Virus record (IMG/VR): IMGVR_UViG_3300023174_000045 | Coordinates: 62,001 to 126,000 of that record | DNA length: 64,000 nt | Reading direction: 5' to 3' (one strand) | In this document: positions 148 through 11,219 of the stretch, piece after piece | Numbering within the stretch: position 1 is the first letter of the stretch | How the letters are laid out: every line of letters starts with the position of its first letter | Notes under the pieces: generated by a model | What the model was told of the DNA's origin: nothing | Database searches by the model: none | What the model saw: the letters and a program-made list of their open reading frames with translations, nothing else | Program-made: the position numbers and the translations under genes

Positions 148-390
148 ATGATGATTAGTGCAGTATTATTTGTCGTTGCCTTAATAGGATGGGGGTGGCT
201 GGTGTTTGGAAATCATTTCACATGGCTGGAACGCCGCCGAGAACTATGCAGTATTGGTGACCATTGGTTGACCAATAAGGGATTTACTTGGCATAACAAG
301 CACGGTGAATACTTTAGCGAGCATCATTGCAGAGCTTGCGATTACATGAAGGTACACAATGAGCCCAGAGCAACAGATCCGAGTACATGA
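148..390 (+). CDS. hypothetical protein with N-terminal TM segment
   Basis: ORF with upstream GAGGAG SD; hydrophobic N-terminus. Confidence 0.7.
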   Translation: MMISAVLFVVALIGWGWLVFGNHFTWLERRRELCSIGDHWLTNKGFTWHNKHGEYFSEHHCRACDYMKVHNEPRATDPST

Positions 391-592
391 AGAATGGTGC
401 CGACTGCGAGTAGAGGCCGCTGAGGCTGATCGTGACTATGCACTGGGCTTGGCCGGTGCCGCACATTTGGAATTGATGCAAGCCTTGAAATATGGATTCA
501 ATCCTGCCTCAGCACACAGCACACTGATCAGCATTGGCAAGTTGAGTCCAAGACTAAATCAAATAAGAGAAGAATATGAACGAAAAGTTTAA
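359..592 (+). CDS. hypothetical protein
   Basis: ORF in tightly packed + strand run. Confidence 0.6.
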   Translation: MSPEQQIRVHEEWCRLRVEAAEADRDYALGLAGAAHLELMQALKYGFNPASAHSTLISIGKLSPRLNQIREEYERKV

Positions 593-815
593 ACAGTTGG
601 CCCTCGAGGCCAAGATGGCGACTGCGGACTTTGATGTAGGCAGTTACTATGTGGCCACACCAGATCGGATGCAGAAACTTTGCGAATTGATTGTGCGGGA
701 ATGTGCCAAAGCCTGTATCAATATGGGCAATGACTATGAAATAAAATCTGCTGGTCAGTATCAAGCAGAAATGTTTGCTTTTGCGATTAAAAAACATTTT
801 GGAGTTGAACAATGA
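576..815 (+). CDS. hypothetical phage protein
   Basis: ORF overlapping neighbours; ATGA coupling to next gene. Confidence 0.7.
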   Translation: MNEKFKQLALEAKMATADFDVGSYYVATPDRMQKLCELIVRECAKACINMGNDYEIKSAGQYQAEMFAFAIKKHFGVEQ

Positions 816-1537
816 AAATTTACATCAGCGGATATAGAGATCATTGGATCTCACCTTACACCATGCTGGACTATGTGTTCTTCTGGACTGACTGGTCCAA
901 GTGTGCTCGTTGGACTGTGGAACAAAGTCTTGAAGATCATCGTAGAGAAAAATCTCAGTTTGTGGAACGTCCAGACTGGTGTGAAAAGTGGAGTGACCGT
1001 CTTACACCCATCAGCCGGGGCATCATGTGGGTACTGGATCGTGTGCATCCGCCCATCAACTACATCAAGATTGACCGCTACGATACCTGGAGCATGGACC
1101 ATACATTGAGTCCAATTATCTTGCCCATGCTGAAACAACTCAAAGAAAAAAAGCATGGCGCACCGTTTGTGGATGACGAGGATGTGCCTGAAGAACTGAA
1201 GTCAACATCTGCACCGCCCAAAGAAAATGACTGGGACACTGATGCCAATCACTTTGCTCGTTGGGACTGGGTCATGGATGAAATGATCTTTGCGTTTGAG
1301 TGCAAGGTAGATGACTCCTGGGAAGAAGCGTTTCGTTCAGGCGAACATGACCTGCTTTGGATACCAGTAGACAAAGAAGGCAATGAAGTGCCCAAAGGTG
1401 AACACAAATACTATCAAATGGGCAAAGGTCCCAAAGATACCTACCAGTGCGATTACGAAGGAATGAAAGTGGTAGAAACTCGCATCCAAAACGGCTTCCG
1501 CTTGTTTGGAAAATATTTTTCTTCGCTCTGGGACTGA
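812..1537 (+). CDS. hypothetical phage protein (Trp/Asp-rich)
   Basis: 241-aa ORF coupled to both neighbours. Confidence 0.8.
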   Translation: MKIYISGYRDHWISPYTMLDYVFFWTDWSKCARWTVEQSLEDHRREKSQFVERPDWCEKWSDRLTPISRGIMWVLDRVHPPINYIKIDRYDTWSMDHTLSPIILPMLKQLKEKKHGAPFVDDEDVPEELKSTSAPPKENDWDTDANHFARWDWVMDEMIFAFECKVDDSWEEAFRSGEHDLLWIPVDKEGNEVPKGEHKYYQMGKGPKDTYQCDYEGMKVVETRIQNGFRLFGKYFSSLWD

Positions 1538-1809
1538 TGCTCGGTCACAACTACAACGATCACAGAGCCAGTTTAGGCTATTCAATTAAAAGTCTAAAAG
1601 AAGCGGATCAGGCATTTCATTCTCGAGCTAAGTGGGCCGTGGAGTTTGCATGGTGGCCACACCGCTGTGAAATCACTAGAAAAATTATTTGGTTGCAACA
1701 TGCTTACCGTGGTTGTGTTAGGTGGTCTGATGGCTGGGCCACACCTGATTATCGTTGGCATGATCGCCATGAACATTTGATTTGGGTATTAAAAGGACCA
1801 TATGGGTAA
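1537..1809 (+). CDS. hypothetical protein
   Basis: TGATG coupling at 1535-1539 gives likely start MLGHNY within the 1447..1809 ORF. Confidence 0.6.
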   Translation: MLGHNYNDHRASLGYSIKSLKEADQAFHSRAKWAVEFAWWPHRCEITRKIIWLQHAYRGCVRWSDGWATPDYRWHDRHEHLIWVLKGPYG

Positions 1810-2056
1810 TGATGCGTTTGAAAACATGACAGCAGACTTGATGAACATGGCCGAAGGAGTAGAACGTCAGCACAGCATTACTGAAGCAGCCTACGAGGCT
1901 TGGCGACTGGAATTCACGTTTGATGGCATTCGAGGTCTTAGATACGGACAGAGTTTTTGCAATCATTTCGACATAACAGATTACGTGCTGTTTTACAAAA
2001 TGGACTGGGAAAGTGCTGATCAACACATAAGGACAGTGTATCTTGTACAGCCCTGA
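1802..2056 (+). CDS. hypothetical protein
   Basis: ORF with AGGA SD. Confidence 0.65.
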   Translation: MGNDAFENMTADLMNMAEGVERQHSITEAAYEAWRLEFTFDGIRGLRYGQSFCNHFDITDYVLFYKMDWESADQHIRTVYLVQP

Positions 2057-2270
2057 ACACACACATGGCCTGACCCTGCACTGGGCTCGGGACGACTACA
2101 TGGAACTGTGGAACATGCGCATGGCCAACATAGTAGAACTGTTTGGCCTGCCCGGTGACAGATACATCACAGAAATCACCCAAGATTACATGACCTTTTG
2201 GTTCCGTGATCACCGCGATGCCTTGCTATTTCGACTATGCCATGGACACAGTGAACTACGTACGGCTTGA
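2043..2270 (+). CDS. small hypothetical protein (FxF...DA..F.L family)
   Basis: C-terminal MTFWFRDHRDALLFRL motif shared with other small ORFs; start uncertain. Confidence 0.6.
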   Translation: MYSPEHTHGLTLHWARDDYMELWNMRMANIVELFGLPGDRYITEITQDYMTFWFRDHRDALLFRLCHGHSELRTA

Positions 2271-2469
2271 TTGTGGTTCTCAACAGGCCTTGGCCTACAA
2301 GCATCAACTGGATGCAGACGGACTTGTAGTGAATCAAGACTATGTCTGGCGCTATCAAAAGCCGGTGTATGATGAATTTGCCTGGACCGAATCAGAAGTC
2401 AGCCACGTCACATTCACATTCCGAAATCCCGCACTGGCCACATTCTATCAGTTAAAGTGGAGTAAATAA
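2206..2469 (+). CDS. small hypothetical protein (same family)
   Basis: C-terminal VTFTFRNPALATFYQLKW; start uncertain. Confidence 0.6.
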   Translation: MITAMPCYFDYAMDTVNYVRLDCGSQQALAYKHQLDADGLVVNQDYVWRYQKPVYDEFAWTESEVSHVTFTFRNPALATFYQLKWSK

Positions 2470-2473
2470 TTTA

Positions 2474-3085
2474 ATGTACAAACACCAACTCACTACACCA
2501 GACTGGTTGTGCCATCCAGCTAATATTTCTCCCGACCTTGTTCCAGCCTTAAGCAAAGAATTACTTGCACTTTATCACCATGTTGCAAATTCTGATGGAG
2601 TGTTAAATTTACCCGGTTTTTTGGTTTCTAATGAAACCGAAGAATTTCATAATAGCACCTGTCCAACTGTTATGTCTATGTTGGCACAACTAAAGATACG
2701 AGATTTTTTTCAACATTTTTGTTTTATCATCGAAGTCGCTGATCAGAATTCGGAGGTGCATGTTGACACTTTTTTTGATTTTGGACTCAATATTCCAATA
2801 TTAAATTGTCATGATAGTTATACTGTATGGTATGACAGTGAACCAGTTGGAAAAAATGTCAGCACAGGATATCAACTTAATTTTAAGTTAAATGTTGTAT
2901 CATGCCAAACTGAGGACATGAAAGAAATTGGTCGTTGTGATGCAAATGTCCCACATTGGATCAATGTCAATGTACCACATCGCCCAGTGGTCATGCATGA
3001 TAAATTAAGAATCAATGCCAGCTTGAGATTCAGCAATGATTTATTAATAGATAAACAGTTACCTTATTGGGTATATACAAAATGA
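2474..3085 (+). CDS. hypothetical protein, possible cupin/2OG-Fe(II) oxygenase-like fold
   Basis: HVD motif, distal His (VPHRP) and RINASLR; AT-rich. Confidence 0.45.
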   Translation: MYKHQLTTPDWLCHPANISPDLVPALSKELLALYHHVANSDGVLNLPGFLVSNETEEFHNSTCPTVMSMLAQLKIRDFFQHFCFIIEVADQNSEVHVDTFFDFGLNIPILNCHDSYTVWYDSEPVGKNVSTGYQLNFKLNVVSCQTEDMKEIGRCDANVPHWINVNVPHRPVVMHDKLRINASLRFSNDLLIDKQLPYWVYTK

Positions 3086-3879
3086 TTCGCGGTCTTATTG
3101 TAATCATTTTATTTTTTTATATCGGAACTGTGCATGGTCGTGAGCCCAGTGTTTACGTTTACAACGAAACCGCGGACCGTGTGGAATACCAACGCAACTC
3201 AACGGAGTATCGTCCCATAGCCAGTATCACCAAGTTAATGACTGCCATGGTGGCCTTGGACCACAGCAAGGACCTATTCCGTCAACTGCCACTCAACACC
3301 ACTGTCAAAAGCAACTTGCCACGTGGCACATACACACGCCAAGAACTGTTCAATGCCATGCTGGTACGTAGTGACAATGCTGCCGCGGAAACACTGGCCA
3401 ATGATTACCCAGGCGGACGTAAAGAGTTTATTTGGAAGATGAATCAACAGGCCCGAGAGTGGGGCATCAATGCTGTGTTTCGTGATCCCACAGGCTTGGA
3501 TCGCGGCAACATGGCCACTGCTGGTGACATAGGAACCATGGCTAGTTACGCCGCGGGATACTGGGTCATACGTGATGCCAGTGTGAAAAAAACAGTGGCA
3601 TTTGAAACCAAATTCAAAAAGAAACTGCGTAAAATTCAACTCAACAATACCAACCGTCCCATCTTGATAGAGTTTGACAACATCATCACTTCAAAAACAG
3701 GATTTACCAATCCAGCAGGTTACTGTGTTGCCCTGGTGGTAGAACATCAAAAGCAACGCAGAGTGATAGTTGTGTTGGGTGAGAAAAACAAAACACGCAG
3801 AATAGACACAGTACAGGACATCATGTACAATCATGTGCTGGATCAAAATTTGCAGGACACCCGGTACATCAATAACTAA
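3082..3879 (+). CDS. D-alanyl-D-alanine carboxy/endopeptidase (peptidase S11, PBP7-like)
   Basis: Signal peptide; SxxK (ASITKLM), SxN (SDN) and KTG (SKTGFT) motifs in order. Confidence 0.9.
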   Translation: MIRGLIVIILFFYIGTVHGREPSVYVYNETADRVEYQRNSTEYRPIASITKLMTAMVALDHSKDLFRQLPLNTTVKSNLPRGTYTRQELFNAMLVRSDNAAAETLANDYPGGRKEFIWKMNQQAREWGINAVFRDPTGLDRGNMATAGDIGTMASYAAGYWVIRDASVKKTVAFETKFKKKLRKIQLNNTNRPILIEFDNIITSKTGFTNPAGYCVALVVEHQKQRRVIVVLGEKNKTRRIDTVQDIMYNHVLDQNLQDTRYINN

Positions 3880-4121
3880 TGTTGATGCAACTGCAACAAC
3901 CCATCGGCTCCATACGTCTCGGCGAAAGTTTCAATCACGCACGGGAAATTGCTAGACCTTTTGGGCAAATTGATCGAATCATAGAGTGGTGCAAAACCGA
4001 ACTTGTGGGCGACTGGCGTTGGCAGGTAGTGGCCACCAGCTCAGACCGTGCTCCGGGACGCTACATTTTCTACTTTGACTCAGACCGTGACGCTGCCGCG
4101 TTTGCACTGTTCTGGGCATAA
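3879..4121 (+). CDS. small hypothetical protein (same family as 2043)
   Basis: C-terminal YIFYFDSDRDAAAFALFW. Confidence 0.65.
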   Translation: MLMQLQQPIGSIRLGESFNHAREIARPFGQIDRIIEWCKTELVGDWRWQVVATSSDRAPGRYIFYFDSDRDAAAFALFWA

Positions 4122-4142
4122 AAAACTAATACTTTTTACTAC

Positions 4143-4171
4143 TTGACTAGATATTCCTGATCTGCTATACT
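4143..4171 (+). promoter_or_regulatory. sigma70-type early promoter
   Basis: TTGACT-N17-TATACT. Confidence 0.75.
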
Positions 4172-4198
4172 ACGGGTATTGTATTGCAAAGGATTGAC

Positions 4199-4435
4199 AT
4201 GAATGACTGGGACCGTAACAACCTGCATTTCATCTTGGATTCAGATGAGGCCACGCTAGAGGACTTTTATAGTTGGGCCACAGAAGATGACTTGACCTAT
4301 GCCTTGAGTCTTGTGCGGCAAGCCAAAACAGAATTACTGATACAAGAAGCCGACATCTTGGACGAAATCTTGACCAATGCCACAGCAGATGATGTGTCAG
4401 ATGCTGCCACCATGTTAAAGCAATTTCAACTATGA
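4199..4435 (+). CDS. hypothetical acidic protein
   Basis: ATG at 4199 after AAAGGA. Confidence 0.7.
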   Translation: MNDWDRNNLHFILDSDEATLEDFYSWATEDDLTYALSLVRQAKTELLIQEADILDEILTNATADDVSDAATMLKQFQL

Positions 4436-4764
4436 GTCATCAGTTTTTGATCATGTGGTGCAATGAAGGCCTTGAGTGTTGCATAGATCTCACTGAGGAT
4501 GAGCAACGGCGCATGTGGCAACAGTTAAAGGGCGAGCCGGTGAGTGAGAGTGCGATTCCCAACTACAATCATCTCCTGCTACGTGCTAGATACAACAGTC
4601 AACGCCACTATGAGATCTACACTTGTGAAGCCACAGATGGCATCACTGCTGAGGATATCAAGGAAATGTTTGAAGCCAGTCCGCAGACTGCGGCTGACAC
4701 GATTCGACGCCTGGGTCACCGCATTCACAGTGACCGGGCCACAAACAAGGTGTTGATCACCTAA
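4432..4764 (+). CDS. hypothetical protein
   Basis: ATGA-coupled ORF. Confidence 0.7.
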   Translation: MSHQFLIMWCNEGLECCIDLTEDEQRRMWQQLKGEPVSESAIPNYNHLLLRARYNSQRHYEIYTCEATDGITAEDIKEMFEASPQTAADTIRRLGHRIHSDRATNKVLIT

Positions 4765-4988
4765 CTGGACGTTCCGGGTGTCTCCGGATACTGTGACCCA
4801 CAGGATGAGAAGTACAATGACATGTACGGGTGGTACACTTCGAACCGAAAGTGCGCTGGCAATGCGAGAACGGACCCTGTCGGGAAGCGGGTGGAAGGTG
4901 TGTGTTACAAGGCATTGAACCAAACGGGGAGCCAAAGTAACAACGGTGCGAGCTGACACACTAAATTACCGCCGGGGGTTGCAGAGCA
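4765..4988 (+). ncRNA. candidate structured ncRNA, class unknown
   Basis: GC-rich intergenic segment with multiple nested helices, 5'/3' long-range pairing and a possible pseudoknot (see findings). Confidence 0.55.
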
Positions 4989-4994
4989 TTTTGG

Positions 4995-5023
4995 TTGACA
5001 CAAATGAATTTTTGTGTTATATT
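4995..5023 (+). promoter_or_regulatory. sigma70-type promoter
   Basis: TTGACA-N17-TATATT with TG extension. Confidence 0.7.
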
Positions 5024-5078
5024 ATGAGCGTCTTGTTTAAGTTATAGGACAAACTCATTTTTTTAAAGGAAACAAATC

Positions 5079-6248
5079 ATGGCAACAACAGTAGCAACTC
5101 GCACAGTAAATCGCGGAGCAAATCCCTTTGCACCCATTGTCAAACAACAAAATCAACGTTTGACTCCCACTCACAACAACAGTGTATATCAGCCCATCAC
5201 ACAACGTGCTGGCGCCATACACAACAATCCTGCAATACAACAAGCACTAAAAATCCTTGCCGCCAACATGGCCGGGCAGAAATTTTCCAATGCTCATTGT
5301 GGAGAACTGGTATTAGTACCATTCCACTTGTTGGACATCAATATTGAAATTCAACGCGATGCTGAACCTGAACATCAGGCCAAAATCATTGTGCGTTTTG
5401 ATCCACGCATTTACATGCCTGTGATGGCTACCAAGTTAGCCAATGGTAGATACTCAGCGTGGGAGGGTCAGCAAACTGCTTGTACCTTGTATCACTTGTA
5501 TCAAGCTGGACTGTTAGAAGATGATTTCTTGGTCCAAGTCAAATGCTTTGACGAAACACTCACAGTACCGGGTTCTGCACTGGTAGGCGAAGCAGATGGC
5601 AATTATGGTTTCCGTCAAATCAATGGCGGCATGCGCAAACCCATTGATGCATTCCACTTGCACCGCAGTCGTGTCAACGGCGCTCGTTTATACAATTCTG
5701 TGTTTGACGAAGACGTACAAAGTGAAATGATTCAGTGTGTGCTGGAACGCAACAACATGTTTCCAGCCAAGTCCAGTGCGGCCAAGTACAACCAAGCCAC
5801 TCCAGGCATGGTCACTTACATTCATGGTTTGAATTTGATTGCTGGACATGGCACTGACATGAAGAAATTCAACGAAACCATCAAAGACCTAGAGTGGGCA
5901 CTGAAGTGGCACAACACCTACTTCCCCAATGAAAAGGGCGTGGATGGTGGTTTTATTCTTGCATTTGGTCGACTGCACGCCGCGGCACGTACCAACAAGC
6001 CTGAGATCAAATTGGATCATGCTGTGGAACTGGACCTGTACAAATTGTTCCAACACAAATACGGCAGTCCCAAGAGCTTCCACAATGACTGCAAACAACG
6101 CTGGGGTACATTCACTGCTGCCAACAACATGCCTGAATCTTGGAGCGACGGTTGCTTGACTCCCATCTTGGTCATGGACTATATAAACTGGGGCGGGCAG
6201 TGTGCTTTGCCGCAAGTGCCACACATGACAACTTACGCAGGTATCTAA
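5079..6248 (+). CDS. ParB/Srx-superfamily (DGQHR-like) domain protein
   Basis: IQRD...FDP...GRYSAWEGQQT resembles the ParB-like QR...DGQHR pattern. Confidence 0.5.
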   Translation: MATTVATRTVNRGANPFAPIVKQQNQRLTPTHNNSVYQPITQRAGAIHNNPAIQQALKILAANMAGQKFSNAHCGELVLVPFHLLDINIEIQRDAEPEHQAKIIVRFDPRIYMPVMATKLANGRYSAWEGQQTACTLYHLYQAGLLEDDFLVQVKCFDETLTVPGSALVGEADGNYGFRQINGGMRKPIDAFHLHRSRVNGARLYNSVFDEDVQSEMIQCVLERNNMFPAKSSAAKYNQATPGMVTYIHGLNLIAGHGTDMKKFNETIKDLEWALKWHNTYFPNEKGVDGGFILAFGRLHAAARTNKPEIKLDHAVELDLYKLFQHKYGSPKSFHNDCKQRWGTFTAANNMPESWSDGCLTPILVMDYINWGGQCALPQVPHMTTYAGI

Positions 6249-6249
6249 A

Positions 6250-6618
6250 ATGGAAGAAGCCAAACAATACTACTTCTATCTGTGGCGGCATCGTTACATT
6301 GATGATGCAACCGACCAGCCAGTCACACGCACATGCCTTGGCATCACCAGCAATCCCACATCAAGGATTCAGGGATATGAAGGTCATGTGGGACACACAG
6401 TAAAATTTACAACACTGTGGACTGGTCCTGAAAGATTGATCCGTGACCTTGAAGACAAAATCAAACGCGAGTTCTACGACTACTTGTTTGTGGGCACTGG
6501 CAATTTTAGATATGAATGGATTGACGAAAATGTTGATCATCACTCAGTGGTCAACTGGGTCACATGGGAAGTTGAAAACAGCTATATTGGCATTACCAAA
6601 GTTGAGGACACACAATGA
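6250..6618 (+). CDS. GIY-YIG-like nuclease domain protein
   Basis: YFYL...LGITSNPTSRIQGY...LE pattern. Confidence 0.5.
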   Translation: MEEAKQYYFYLWRHRYIDDATDQPVTRTCLGITSNPTSRIQGYEGHVGHTVKFTTLWTGPERLIRDLEDKIKREFYDYLFVGTGNFRYEWIDENVDHHSVVNWVTWEVENSYIGITKVEDTQ

Positions 6619-6857
6619 GCTCACTATATCTCAATTCAAGAACTTGGACTGTGTTTGACCCAAACAACGCAGACCACAGACGCTACTACTATGAGTTTAT
6701 CAAAACAAATACCTGGGGCCGCTGTCCTGTGAGGTTCGTGGTGCCGGATCGTCAAGGCGATTTGATCTCCATGATCCGTCGCAGTTTAATTGATTGGTAT
6801 GTGATGAACGAGTTTGATTCTAAAGGCAAACCTGGCAGGAAAAAAGTCAATGCCTGA
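6615..6857 (+). CDS. hypothetical protein
   Basis: Coupled ORF with GAGGA SD. Confidence 0.7.
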   Translation: MSSLYLNSRTWTVFDPNNADHRRYYYEFIKTNTWGRCPVRFVVPDRQGDLISMIRRSLIDWYVMNEFDSKGKPGRKKVNA

Positions 6858-8214
6858 CTTTACTGTTTGCACAGCCGCAGAGCTGGTTGATCTCTATCAA
6901 AAAGGGTCAGCCAGTCCTGTGACAGTGACTGAACAACTATTAAACAAGATTGACCAACTCAATCCTGTGTTAAATGCATTTTGTTATTTAGATCCTGATA
7001 CTACACTGCAACAGGCCCGGAACAGTGAACAACGCTGGCAACAGCACAGTCCATTGAGTAAATTGGATGGAGTGCCATTTGCTGTCAAAGATTCAATATT
7101 AACTCAAGGTTGGCCTACTTTGCAAGGAAGTCTAACTGTTGATCCTGTACAAGACTGGCCGGAGGACGCACCAGTGACTGCTCGATTACGAGCAGCCGGT
7201 GCAATTTTAATTGGCAAAACCACCATGCCTGAATTTGGAGTTGACAACCACAGTTCAAATTCGCAGTTGTATGGCATCACCCGAAATCCTTGGAATACCA
7301 AACACACACCTGGAGGCAGCTCCGGCGGATCGGCGGTGGCGGTGGCTGCCGGCATGGTACCAGTGGCCTTGGGCAGTGATTTTGGAGGAAGCATTGCTGT
7401 GCCCGCGGCATTCTGTGGCGTGTATGGTATGAAACCCAGTTTTGGACATGTTGCAAGATATCCCAGTGACACAGTTGATTTGACCACCATAGGACCAATG
7501 GCCAGATCGGTGCAGGATTTGACCACTGCACTTGAAGTAATTTCAGGTCCTGATGTTCGAGATTGGGCATCACTGCCTGATGGTCGGGTAGATCATAATT
7601 TTTCAACAAACCAATTACGAGTGGCATATTGTCAAGACTCAGTGACCACGTCTAAAATAGCACAAAGGTTGTCAGATCAAGGAGCAATGATTGGCCCCGT
7701 AGACTTTGACGTTGACATTGATGACGCAATGCAAATTATGAAAAACATCAATATTCCAGAACTATTTCAAAAATGGCAAAGTATACCTGAAGATCGTCGA
7801 CCACTGACCAGCAACAACATACAAAGATGGGCCATACTGTCCCATTCCAAAATTGATTTGTATCATTGGATTGATCGACGCAAAAAATTAATAGTTAAAT
7901 TTCGTGAATTCATGCAACACTATGACGCAATAATTTGTCCAGTCACTGCAATGTCTGCTGACGAATTTTTGGTTGATAATATGGTATCTCATAAAAAAGA
8001 TTTATTTCTTTCACAATTTTCTGTTTTGGCCTGCATTACAAAACAACCCACAGTCACAGTGCCAACAGGATTAAACAGTAATTCAATGCCTGAGGCTGTG
8101 CAAATTATTGGACCCATGCATGGCGATACATTGACATTACAAATAGCAAGTGCAATAGAATCCGCTTTCCCAATGCCTGCTGGTCCACTGTTATACGGCA
8201 AGTCAACACAGTAA
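6850..8214 (+). CDS. amidase signature family enzyme (GatA-like)
   Basis: AVKD Lys, GKTTMPEFG, PGGSSGGSA and GSDFGGSI motifs (Ser-cisSer-Lys triad). Confidence 0.9.
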   Translation: MPDFTVCTAAELVDLYQKGSASPVTVTEQLLNKIDQLNPVLNAFCYLDPDTTLQQARNSEQRWQQHSPLSKLDGVPFAVKDSILTQGWPTLQGSLTVDPVQDWPEDAPVTARLRAAGAILIGKTTMPEFGVDNHSSNSQLYGITRNPWNTKHTPGGSSGGSAVAVAAGMVPVALGSDFGGSIAVPAAFCGVYGMKPSFGHVARYPSDTVDLTTIGPMARSVQDLTTALEVISGPDVRDWASLPDGRVDHNFSTNQLRVAYCQDSVTTSKIAQRLSDQGAMIGPVDFDVDIDDAMQIMKNINIPELFQKWQSIPEDRRPLTSNNIQRWAILSHSKIDLYHWIDRRKKLIVKFREFMQHYDAIICPVTAMSADEFLVDNMVSHKKDLFLSQFSVLACITKQPTVTVPTGLNSNSMPEAVQIIGPMHGDTLTLQIASAIESAFPMPAGPLLYGKSTQ

Positions 8215-8313
8215 TACTCAAGTATTACTTTTTTGCCCCTATAATTTGTAGGGTTTCTCTTGACCGAATATTCCCAAAATGCTATAATATAGACATATTG
8301 TAACAAAAAGGAG
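8210..8313 (+). repeat. stem-loop + sigma70 promoter + SD cassette, copy 1
   Basis: AGTAATAC-tcaa-GTATTACT hairpin; TTGACC(8260)-N17-TATAAT(8283); AAATGCTATAATATxxACATATTGTAACAAAA(A)GGAG core. Confidence 0.85.
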
Positions 8314-8319
8314 CCAGTA

Positions 8320-8592
8320 ATGAAAGCACTCAACGCACTGATCAAACAAGAGAACGCTTGGTCCAGCATGTTCAACGGCAGTTTTGTGGCCTACGAAGTT
8401 GCCACAGCACCGGGTCGTGAGCGTGTGGCAAAAATGATTGACGCCAAGCTCAGTCCTGAGAATTTGAGCTGTGACGGCGAACTGCCCCGTGCTCAAGTAC
8501 AAGCTCGCTATCGCGCACTGACCAGTGCCGCACAAGATCTTGTCCGACTGGACCCCACAATGGCTCAGTTCATGTACGAGTTTGGAGAATAA
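8320..8592 (+). CDS. hypothetical early protein
   Basis: Follows promoter and AGGAG SD. Confidence 0.8.
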   Translation: MKALNALIKQENAWSSMFNGSFVAYEVATAPGRERVAKMIDAKLSPENLSCDGELPRAQVQARYRALTSAAQDLVRLDPTMAQFMYEFGE

Positions 8593-8593
8593 C

Positions 8594-8794
8594 ATGTGGA
8601 CCATTGCTGTAATCTTTGCCAGCTCTGTGCAGAACATAGGGCAGTTCACAAATCAGTCAGAATGTGAACGTGTCCTGGCACAGTTCCAAAAGCCCGGTGT
8701 GGTAGCAGGTTGTGTGCAACACCCCACACCTGAACAAAGCCTAGCACAGGCACAACGCATGATGAATGCCTTTATCAACAGCATGGAAAAGTAA
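8594..8794 (+). CDS. hypothetical protein
   Basis: ATG at 8594 after GGAG. Confidence 0.65.
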   Translation: MWTIAVIFASSVQNIGQFTNQSECERVLAQFQKPGVVAGCVQHPTPEQSLAQAQRMMNAFINSMEK

Positions 8795-8872
8795 TACTTT
8801 TTTAGTACTACTTTTCTGGTTGACCAGAAATAGCCGAAATGCTATAATATGAACATATTGTAACAAAAGGAG
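8788..8872 (+). repeat. stem-loop + sigma70 promoter + SD cassette, copy 2
   Basis: AAAGTAATACT...AGTACTACTTT hairpin; TTGACC(8820)-N17-TATAAT(8843); same core. Confidence 0.85.
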
Positions 8873-8878
8873 TTGTAA

Positions 8879-9355
8879 ATGGGAACACGCAGTCGAATTG
8901 GTGTCATGCACGGTGACAAGGTCAAAAGCATTTACTGCCATTGGGATGGCTACATAGAACACAACGGTCGTATCTTGCAAAATCACTATGACAGTGCCCG
9001 AGCCAACCACCTGGTGGCCCTGGGCGATATGTCAAGCCTGCAACCTGACATTGGTGAGAAGCACGCCTTCAGCAAGCATGACGTTCTTGGCATTGAGCAC
9101 CGTGAGCACAACGAAGAATGGTGTACCTTTTACGGACGTGATCGCGGTGAAAAGGACGTGGAGCACAAAGTGGCTCACACGTTTGACGAGTTCTTGGAAC
9201 AATGCGAGCTCTGTGGCGCCGAGTACTACTACATCATGAAAGATGGTGTGTGGTACATGGGCGACACTTACAGCTCTACCCCGTTAAGCAAAAAGTTAAC
9301 AGTTTTGACTGAAGCTTTGGAACAGTTTGCAGACGCTGAAGAGGTTGACCAATAA
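8879..9355 (+). CDS. hypothetical early phage protein (MGTRS..I...YCHWDGY type)
   Basis: ORF after promoter and SD. Confidence 0.8.
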   Translation: MGTRSRIGVMHGDKVKSIYCHWDGYIEHNGRILQNHYDSARANHLVALGDMSSLQPDIGEKHAFSKHDVLGIEHREHNEEWCTFYGRDRGEKDVEHKVAHTFDEFLEQCELCGAEYYYIMKDGVWYMGDTYSSTPLSKKLTVLTEALEQFADAEEVDQ

Positions 9356-9397
9356 TTGCCAAAATGCTATAATATGAACATATTGTAACAAAAGGAG
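9345..9397 (+). repeat. sigma70 promoter + SD cassette, copy 3
   Basis: TTGACC(9345)-N17-TATAAT(9368); same core. Confidence 0.85.
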
Positions 9398-9403
9398 CCC
9401 ACA

Positions 9404-9628
9404 ATGCAAGACACAAAAGAGATCTATTACGGCATGTTTACAGATGCAGGCAACCAGGCTGTGCATGCCATTGTTGAACACGCTCAAGCCAGCAGTCTGA
9501 CTTGGTTGGAAGTGTATCAAGAACTGTGCCGCTTGGCTGAAGTCAAGGCATTTGGTGAAGCCACTGACACCATGGTGCGTGAGATTGTTTATGACGCATT
9601 AGGTTTCAATTCTGATTTTTACGTTTAA
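9404..9628 (+). CDS. hypothetical early protein
   Basis: ORF after promoter and SD. Confidence 0.8.
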   Translation: MQDTKEIYYGMFTDAGNQAVHAIVEHAQASSLTWLEVYQELCRLAEVKAFGEATDTMVREIVYDALGFNSDFYV

Positions 9629-9638
9629 GGAGTCGGAG

Positions 9639-9827
9639 ATGACAATACGTAACGAATATTTGTGGCTTGTGTTGATTGTGGCCATCATCATTGTTGGCCC
9701 GCTGTTGAGCATCTGGGCCTTGAACACTTTGTTCCCTGTGTTGGCAATCCCTTACACCTTTGAAACATGGTTGGCTGTGATGTTGGTAGGCGGTATGTTC
9801 CGTGGCAGTTTTGTTCGGAAAGACTGA
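9639..9827 (+). CDS. small membrane protein
   Basis: Two hydrophobic segments; AAGGAG SD. Confidence 0.7.
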   Translation: MTIRNEYLWLVLIVAIIIVGPLLSIWALNTLFPVLAIPYTFETWLAVMLVGGMFRGSFVRKD

Positions 9828-9828
9828 T

Positions 9829-10596
9829 ATGTTTGTAGACGTAACCAACATGACAGCCCGTGACGTGCAACGTCTGGGTCACGAGGACGATGAGGGTCCT
9901 GTGCAACGCCAGTGGACATCACGCCGCAGTGCCGGTGGTGGACATCGTGGCTACAGTATCAGTGATGTGTGGGGTGCGGCATGCCATGCACAACGCATCA
10001 ATGGTGCCTACATCAAACAAGATGAGTGGGAACTGCCTTCAGAGTCGGCAACTGCTGTGCAACTCAAACGCAAGAGCAATCGCAACATCATGATGGAAGC
10101 CTTGGAAAATCCTTTCATGATCACTGACGAAGATCGTGTGGCAGGTGGGGAGTGCCTGAAATTCATTCAAAATGACATGACCTTCCGAGCACTGAAAAAT
10201 CAGCTCACAGACTTTGACCGTAGTGTAATGAAGATCACTGCTGTGACAGATAGATTCTTTCCGCAGGCGCATAAATTAGAATTAGCCACTGTGGCTTGTT
10301 TGCCCAACAGCTATCAACGTGCTTTGCAACGCATTGCGGAACAGGACCGGATCAATCAAACTGTTGGCTACATAGGCACAGTGGGCGACAAGGTCACAGT
10401 CACAGTGGACATTGTTCGTTGCAACTTCAGTCAGAAGTGGAACACCTATTATGCCACTGGCATCACAGCCAACAATGAAACAGTGTTCTTTTCCATCCGT
10501 GAACCCTTGAACACAGGCACAACATTGTCAATCCGTGGTACCGTCAAAGCTCACCGTGACGGACAAACCCAACTCAACCGTGTGAGCGTTTTATAA
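9829..10596 (+). CDS. hypothetical protein with C-terminal OB-fold-like domain
   Basis: C-terminal beta-rich region ending IRGTVKAH..QTQLNRV. Confidence 0.6.
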   Translation: MFVDVTNMTARDVQRLGHEDDEGPVQRQWTSRRSAGGGHRGYSISDVWGAACHAQRINGAYIKQDEWELPSESATAVQLKRKSNRNIMMEALENPFMITDEDRVAGGECLKFIQNDMTFRALKNQLTDFDRSVMKITAVTDRFFPQAHKLELATVACLPNSYQRALQRIAEQDRINQTVGYIGTVGDKVTVTVDIVRCNFSQKWNTYYATGITANNETVFFSIREPLNTGTTLSIRGTVKAHRDGQTQLNRVSVL

Positions 10597-10606
10597 GGGA
10601 ATCGCA

Positions 10607-10735
10607 ATGAAAAATATCTTTATTGGTTTTGTATTAGGCTTGGTTGTTGCGTCAGTGGGCTTTTCGGGCATTGCTCGAATTGCTGACCGAGGCGTCCAAA
10701 CCATCCAAACCCAAAGCAAAGAATTGGCCCAGTAA
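10607..10735 (+). CDS. small membrane protein, 42 aa (not in ORF track)
   Basis: MKNIFIGFVLGLVVASVGFSGIARIADRGVQTIQTQSKELAQ after AAGGGA. Confidence 0.6.
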   Translation: MKNIFIGFVLGLVVASVGFSGIARIADRGVQTIQTQSKELAQ

Positions 10736-10771
10736 TTCGGGCAAATCAAATCTAGATTGTGCAAAAAATGG

Positions 10772-10800
10772 TTGACACCAATATCGTTTTTGTGTATAAT
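10772..10800 (+). promoter_or_regulatory. sigma70-type promoter
   Basis: TTGACA-N17-TATAAT, perfect consensus. Confidence 0.85.
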
Positions 10801-10865
10801 TTGGATATGCTGACAAACAGCATGTTTCGTAACTTAACTTTAGGCAACTTTTGAAAGGCAACATC

Positions 10866-11219
10866 ATGTCAAACGACAAAACTTTTACCGTAGCAGGCAC
10901 CGCAACCAACAAAGATGGCACCGTCAAGGTCCGCTTTGCAAACGATCTTGTGGCTCGTATCAAGATCTTGAACAAGGCAGGTTGCAACAACATCAACTTG
11001 GTTGAACTGCCCCAGGCAATGACCAAGTTAGAAGCCCTGCAATACCTGCAGGCGCAAGGCATCACCACTGGTGATGAAGGCTTTGCAGTAGCAAACAAGC
11101 TGGCTGAGAAGAGCAAAGTGGCCAAGAAAGGCGAAGTCAAGGTCTCTGCAAAGAGTGCCAAGGCCAAGTCTGCTCCTGCAACTGTCAAGTCAGATGCAGT
11201 TGAAAGCACCAACGCCTAA
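10866..11219 (+). CDS. hypothetical basic protein with Lys/Ala-rich tail
   Basis: ORF between promoter and terminator. Confidence 0.75.
   Translation: MSNDKTFTVAGTATNKDGTVKVRFANDLVARIKILNKAGCNNINLVELPQAMTKLEALQYLQAQGITTGDEGFAVANKLAEKSKVAKKGEVKVSAKSAKAKSAPATVKSDAVESTNA

Follow-up and report, generated by a model that had tools for sequence, protein, structure and literature searches.

A structured RNA of phage tRNA islands

Does a short, G+C-rich stretch between two phage genes encode a structured RNA, and if so, what sort of RNA is it? The question arises at positions 4765-4988 of a 64,000-nt window (the whole stretch of DNA that was analysed), which corresponds to positions 62001-126000 of a 225-kb IMG/VR virus record (IMGVR_UViG_3300023174_000045) estimated to be 65% complete, and so to a jumbo phage. 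The original prediction, made from sequence alone, listed eight pairs of complementary segments and proposed a structured, probably pseudoknotted RNA that could not be matched by eye to tRNA, tmRNA, RNase P or a small ribozyme. All eight segment pairs are present in the sequence. The region has no conserved ORF and its G+C content is 0.53-0.565, against about 0.40-0.48 in its flanks. Upstream is a 110-aa ORF of unknown function (4432-4764, +), whose stop codon lies 2 nt before the element as delimited below. Downstream, starting 6 nt after the element, is a sigma-70-like promoter (4995-5023, +; TTGACA, 17 nt, TATATT; 11 of 12) for a 389-aa ORF at 5079-6248. The 5' untranslated region of that ORF (4999-5081) is partly conserved in the loci of three of its homologues and gives a weak, sub-threshold match to the Rfam 'freshwater-2' motif (15.4 bits against a gathering score of 49.9, E = 7.6), which is probably due to chance. 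In the wider neighbourhood (3067-3879 and 6615-8214) the phage encodes a D-Ala-D-Ala carboxypeptidase (Peptidase_S11, E = 4e-37) and a 466-aa amidase-family protein (E = 1.5e-85) preceded by an overlapping 80-aa ORF, a layout that resembles gatC-gatA.

Taken alone, the sequence does not fold better than chance. The MFE is -68.5 kcal/mol against a shuffle mean of -71.3, giving z = +0.62 on the + strand and +0.44 on the - strand. No match to any of the 4227 models of Rfam 15 was found in the window at gathering score, and none within the element at E <= 10. In the largest variant (locus L096) the only match at E <= 10 is a weak, chance-level, minus-strand hit to a nematode snoRNA (ceN44, E 0.39, 18.2 bits against a gathering score of 70), and the loci of eleven relatives give only tRNAs and one tmRNA elsewhere. 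ARAGORN finds no tRNA or tmRNA in the window. A blastn search of 50,697 GenBank phage records, T4-like records included, gave no match with either the window locus or the commonest variant as query. An exact-pattern scan of 185,579 prokaryote species genomes gave 14 hits, about the number expected by chance, none of which matched the family HMM. Searches of 8.4 million papers and preprints, by topic and by the conserved sequence strings, found no description of the element, although it may be listed anonymously among about 10,000 candidate viral structured RNAs (PMC10690425), whose individual motifs could not be compared.

Comparison with relatives, in contrast, makes the structure real. Homologues of the 110-aa ORF in viral contigs (loci L005-L009) carry the same stretch directly after their stop codon, where it is more conserved than the flanking coding sequence and four hairpins show compensatory changes. 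A 51%-identical homologue of the ORF in an AT-rich phage (L010) ends with the same KVLIT* and has no element after it, so the element is not part of this gene. The last codons of the ORF (4748-4762) form a hairpin (AGGUG-UUGAU-CACCU), and the stretch GTGTTGATCACCT (4750-4762) is identical at every base, including synonymous sites, in all six relatives that carry the element, whereas L010 encodes the same residues with other codons and has no hairpin; it could be a processing or stability signal. A pattern built on two invariant blocks matched 114 places in viral contigs, and a second pattern, based on the 5' domain and leaving the 3' domain unconstrained, gave at least 119 matches. A profile HMM finds 173 full-length copies among the retrieved loci, representing 128 distinct sequences and 131 distinct contexts, all from uncultivated phage contigs. 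Across 73 to 128 distinct homologues in unrelated flanks, conservation begins at about 4767-4769 and ends at about 4989, almost exactly the limits first proposed. The element is thus 4767-4989 (+), 223 nt here and 197-270 nt in relatives.

On 73 sequences, 97.9% of cells form standard pairs against 85.7% in shuffles, 25 pairs change on both sides, and the covariation score is 0.362, against at most 0.081 when partners are slid by 1-3 columns. With the second set of sequences the model was refined, and the 128 distinct homologues support nine helices with many compensatory changes. The 5' domain opens with a single-stranded tail, (G/A)AACGU (4767-4772), in which A4769 is 96% and C4770 100% conserved. 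It is followed by hairpin P1 (4773-4788; 4773-4777 with 4784-4788), 99.5% paired with five pair types at 4777-4784, and by P2 (4791-4803; 4791-4794 with 4800-4803; loop GACCC), 100% paired with compensatory changes at three of four pairs. A conserved junction, GAUGAGAA (4804-4811; columns 88-100% conserved), leads to P3 (4812-4827; 4812-4816 with 4823-4827), with compensatory changes at three pairs. After the near-invariant strand GGGUGGUA (4828-4835; 96-100% conserved) come P4 (4836-4853; 4836-4840 with 4849-4853), with compensatory changes at four pairs and a loop containing an invariant CC preceded by a near-invariant A (..ACC..), and P5 (4854-4866; 4854-4856 with 4864-4866), CGC/GCG with the 7-nt loop U(G/A)GCAAU, 100% paired, in which 4856-4864 is C-G 103 and U-A 25.

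The 3' domain is one long irregular arm. Its base is the long-range helix P6, whose 5' strand (4873-4882) pairs as 4873-4878 with 4975-4980 and 4881-4882 with 4973-4974, leaving a GU bulge; it is 100% paired with up to four pair types per position, and is compensated, for example, as GAAUC/GAUUC in one relative (L113). A local hairpin CCC-UGUC-GGG was rejected in favour of P6. P7 (GCGG, 4887-4890, with 4969-4972) is also 100% paired, and its 3' strand is continuous with that of P6 (4969-4980). Pair 4888-4971 occurs as C-G 116, U-A 6 and A-U 6 and is never unpaired, which rejects two competing registers using the same CCGCC, namely GGUGG with CCGCC and the long-range GGUGGUA/UUACCGCC helix given by RNAalifold. 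An internal loop follows, with GUGGAAG (4891-4897) opposite UA(U)AAUUA (4962-4968). In the first set of sequences 4891-4894 and 4966-4968 were fixed by the search pattern, but GUGGAAG is conserved as well in the members found through the 5'-domain pattern, which places no constraint there. P8 (4898-4903 with 4956-4961, within 4898-4961) has five pairs with compensatory changes and carries a distal part (4904-4955) that varies in length and sequence and is longer here than in most relatives. The 3' tail, GCAGAGCAU (4981-4989), is 97-100% conserved.

Tertiary contacts are also indicated. A mutual-information scan found a loop-loop contact between P1 (UGUC, 4779-4782) and P3 (GACA, 4819-4822), in which 4780-4821 occurs as G-C 88, A-U 26 and G-U 10. 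The near-invariant GGGUGGU (4828-4834) can pair with the P2 loop (ACCC) and/or the P4 loop (ACC, 4844-4846). In three sequences U4831C co-occurs with A4844G and with a changed P2 loop, so a pseudoknot is likely, though its register is not resolved, and as several conserved G-rich and C-rich strands could pair in more than one way the tertiary model is incomplete. Measured against these data, five of the eight pairings first proposed are confirmed: CTGTG/CACAG (4791/4799; 100% paired, closing pair C-G 72, G-C 53, U-A 3), GTACA/TGTAC (4812/4823), CACTT/AAGTG (4836/4849), GCGG/CCGC (4887/4969), and GTGTGTT/GACACAC (4900/4955) in the register 4898-4903 with 4956-4961. ACCC/GGGT (4796/4828) is plausible, being nearly invariant with one position changing from A-U to G-C in 3 sequences. 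CGTTC/GAACG (4770/4868) is refuted, as 4773-4774 pair locally in P1 with covariation and the proposed partners give 21 and 25+ mismatches, and TCTCCGG/CCGGGGG (4781/4972) is refuted, as it is only 78% paired and both strands are used by the covarying helices P1 and P6/P7. The proposal of a structured, probably pseudoknotted non-coding RNA is otherwise supported.

Frequent G-U pairs, which would be A-C mismatches on the other strand, show that the RNA is the + strand. Compensatory changes passing through G-U pairs on one strand indicate RNA and not a DNA-level site such as an origin, attachment site or protein-binding array. The sharp borders in many different flanks resemble a mobile insertion, and the element lies among tRNA genes, but a self-splicing intron or a diverged tRNA, tmRNA or RNase P RNA is very unlikely. 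The flanking genes are complete, the upstream ORF ends as its element-free homologue does, a promoter follows the element in the window, tRNAs on both sides in arrays are intact, and no spliced joint was seen. ARAGORN and all Rfam models are negative, and the two ends form no terminal helix of the kind expected for RNase P RNA. Nor do the models or the covariation-supported pairings fit twister, hammerhead, ZTP or cobalamin RNAs or a tRNA cloverleaf.

The genomic niche of the element is distinctive. In 121 of 131 distinct contexts tRNA genes lie within 2.5 kb, and in 113 within 500 nt. All 1256 neighbouring tRNAs are on the element's strand. In 65 contexts a tRNA ends within 3 nt of the first base of the element, typically as ...CCA then (G)AACGU, with a spacer of 0-4 nt before the conserved AACG; the tRNA is most often Tyr (25) or Ser (12). 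In 36 contexts a tRNA starts within 12 nt after the 3' end. The element therefore occupies a slot in the phage tRNA array like another RNA gene, and no consistent neighbouring protein gene was seen. The phage of the window (genome G000) is an exception, as its array of 34 tRNAs and a permuted two-piece tmRNA (tag ANDEQFALAA) lies at C1:160504-171726, about 95 kb away, and nhmmer finds only the one copy in the 225-kb genome. One tRNA of this array (C1:164544-164622, called 'Pyl' by ARAGORN) has a CUA anticodon and so looks like an amber suppressor, and in the relative L096 the tmRNA matches the betaproteobacterial tmRNA model, which hints at a betaproteobacterial host. Three 95-100% complete phages of 332-347 kb have one copy of the element each, whereas a complete 524-kb phage (G003) carries two diverged copies, at C1:424194-424394 (+) and C1:119583-119794 (-), about 300 kb apart and 97% and 84% identical to the commonest variant.

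The same arrays contain two further unannotated modules. Module B (about 165 nt; L019:5119-5285, +) has a 20-bp terminal stem with compensatory changes between loci, an MFE z-score of -5.5 and no Rfam match at E <= 10, and was found in 44 of the retrieved loci. In the phage of the window it sits flush between tRNA-Tyr and tRNA-Asp (G000 C1:164297-164459), the slot where the element usually precedes it. Module C is a conserved stretch of about 78 nt with complementary ends (UUGAAGCACAU ... GUGUGUUUCAA) and no Rfam match, found in 43 of the retrieved loci; it lies between the element and module B in many arrays, for example directly after the element in L017 (about 1432-1510) and also in L020, L021, L029 and L041. 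The common order of tRNA-Tyr, element, C, B, tRNA raises the possibility that the element is one domain of a larger composite RNA in the manner of GOLLD, sometimes with tRNAs in the linkers. This is unlikely, as the element and B are about 98 kb apart in the phage of the window, most copies have no B or C beside them, and B and C have a depth of only 0-25 in the lake RNA run described next, against thousands in the element.

Metatranscriptomes from more than 15 studies of lakes, rivers, estuaries and wetlands contain sequence words of the element. Aligned to the window, contigs of four runs give a summed depth of 45-250 in the element against 0-8 in the flanks. Aligned to the commonest variant with its neighbours (L020), a lake run (X19) gives a depth of 166 to 11,017 inside the element, 15-74 over the junction and the adjoining tRNA-Tyr, and 0-32 beyond the 3' end, with 0-25 over B and C. 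Runs X1 and X16 show the same pattern at lower depth. These are assembled contigs without direction, depth in the invariant core is summed over all family members, DNA in the libraries is not excluded, and tRNAs are poorly recovered by ordinary RNA-seq, which exaggerates the contrast; abundance and molecule ends are thus indicated but not proven. Contig starts at 4769/4770 were not taken as RNA ends, because assembly graphs branch there anyway. In contigs of X19 and of a further run, X23, Illumina adapter sequence abuts the element at fixed internal positions (L020 + strand 433/434, 446 and 562; element positions about 145, 132 and 16), so that many identical short fragments ended there, which fits very high abundance with preferred break or reverse-transcription stop sites. 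Despite the caveats on depth, a family sum of about 10^4 confined to the element fits an abundant, discrete, stable RNA much better than a leader or a DNA site.

A cis-acting role, as a riboswitch or leader for the downstream gene or as a 3'-end structure or terminator protecting the upstream transcript, is accordingly improbable. In the window the element lies in the 3' untranslated region of the 110-aa ORF and is followed by UUUU, and a U run follows in 45 of 94 copies without a tRNA within 15 nt downstream, against 6 of 35 copies that have one; several copies then have an RBS and ATG. However, in most contexts both neighbours are tRNAs, downstream genes differ between contexts, a strong promoter separates the element from the next gene in the window, and no alternative terminator/antiterminator pairing is conserved.

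The main rival is a new self-cleaving ribozyme that cuts at its own 5' edge, releasing the upstream tRNA with its CCA end (or the upstream mRNA) and freeing itself, as HDV-like 'theta' ribozymes are reported to do next to phage tRNAs. The flush junction with CCA would fit this, a structured 200-nt trailer would otherwise block 3' trimming of that tRNA, the core is very strongly conserved and pseudoknotted, as in ribozymes, and depth in X19 falls 7- to 20-fold across the 5' boundary. Nevertheless this reading is doubtful. No ribozyme model in Rfam 15 matches. The first helix is a local, covarying hairpin and not the 5'-terminal P1 of the HDV fold, and at 205 nt the RNA is far larger than known self-cleavers of this kind need, three to four times the size of theta ribozymes, which are probably minimal nested double pseudoknots of about 50-70 nt. 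The spacer after CCA varies, the element is kept intact where no tRNA is near, as in the window, and contigs bridging tRNA and element exist in RNA libraries (X23 record 26).

The invariant unpaired segments, namely the 5' AAC, GAUGAGAA, GGGUGGU, the P4 and P5 loops, the GGAA bulge, the GUGGAAG / UAUAAUUA internal loop and the GCAGAGCA tail, are the obvious functional surface. Several contain UGG or GAAC/AACC, complementary to tRNA CCA ends and to the GGUUC of T arms, which is only a lead. A new class of catalytic or tRNA-recognising RNA, either cutting itself out of tRNA precursors and maturing the neighbouring CCA end, or binding tRNA 3' ends or elbows through these strands and so manipulating translation or blunting tRNA-directed host defences during infection, is not excluded but remains speculative.

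Among known systems the closest are GOLLD and ROOL, which are encoded by phages, often in or beside tRNA islands, have elaborate pseudoknotted covarying structures, and have no known protein partner or function; at least ROOL is reported to be highly abundant (PMC12286853). The element shares their niche but shows no similarity to either covariance model at E <= 10, differs in architecture, and is smaller, at about 205-270 nt against probably well over 500 nt (many GOLLD members exceed 800 nt; PMC12286853). The tmRNA of the same phages is likewise a structured, pseudoknotted RNA gene of the tRNA array matured by tRNA-processing enzymes, but it is separate and recognisable (in G000 and L096), and the element has no tRNA-like domain and no tag reading frame. 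No Ro60/TROVE gene was found in G000 or in four 95-100% complete carrier phages, with control genomes positive, so neither the element nor module B is an obvious Y RNA.

Taken together, the data identify a previously uncatalogued family of phage non-coding RNAs of about 200-270 nt. The best reading, held with moderate confidence in the absence of any functional test, is an independent RNA gene. It is inferred to be co-transcribed with tRNAs in the polycistronic precursor (in the window, instead, behind two small ORFs, possibly from a promoter-like site at 4143-4171) and to be cut out by the nucleases that mature tRNAs, that is, RNase P at the 5' end of the next tRNA and an endonuclease plus trimming at the CCA of the preceding one. 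It would then accumulate as a stable RNA acting in trans, and its invariant unpaired nucleotides most plausibly contact a conserved partner of the tRNA or translation apparatus, or of a host defence aimed at it, although nothing points to a specific partner. Phage tRNA islands are already known to hold puzzling large RNAs, GOLLD and ROOL, whose roles are unsolved. The element adds a third class that is much smaller, and so easier to study, with hundreds of natural variants, a nearly complete covariation-supported secondary structure and signs of very high abundance in lakes and rivers. Its near-invariant unpaired nucleotides point to a conserved partner or to a catalytic centre, and finding that partner could show what phage tRNA islands do beyond supplying tRNAs. 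As the same arrays hold at least two further unannotated structured modules, these islands look like a general reservoir of unknown RNA biology.
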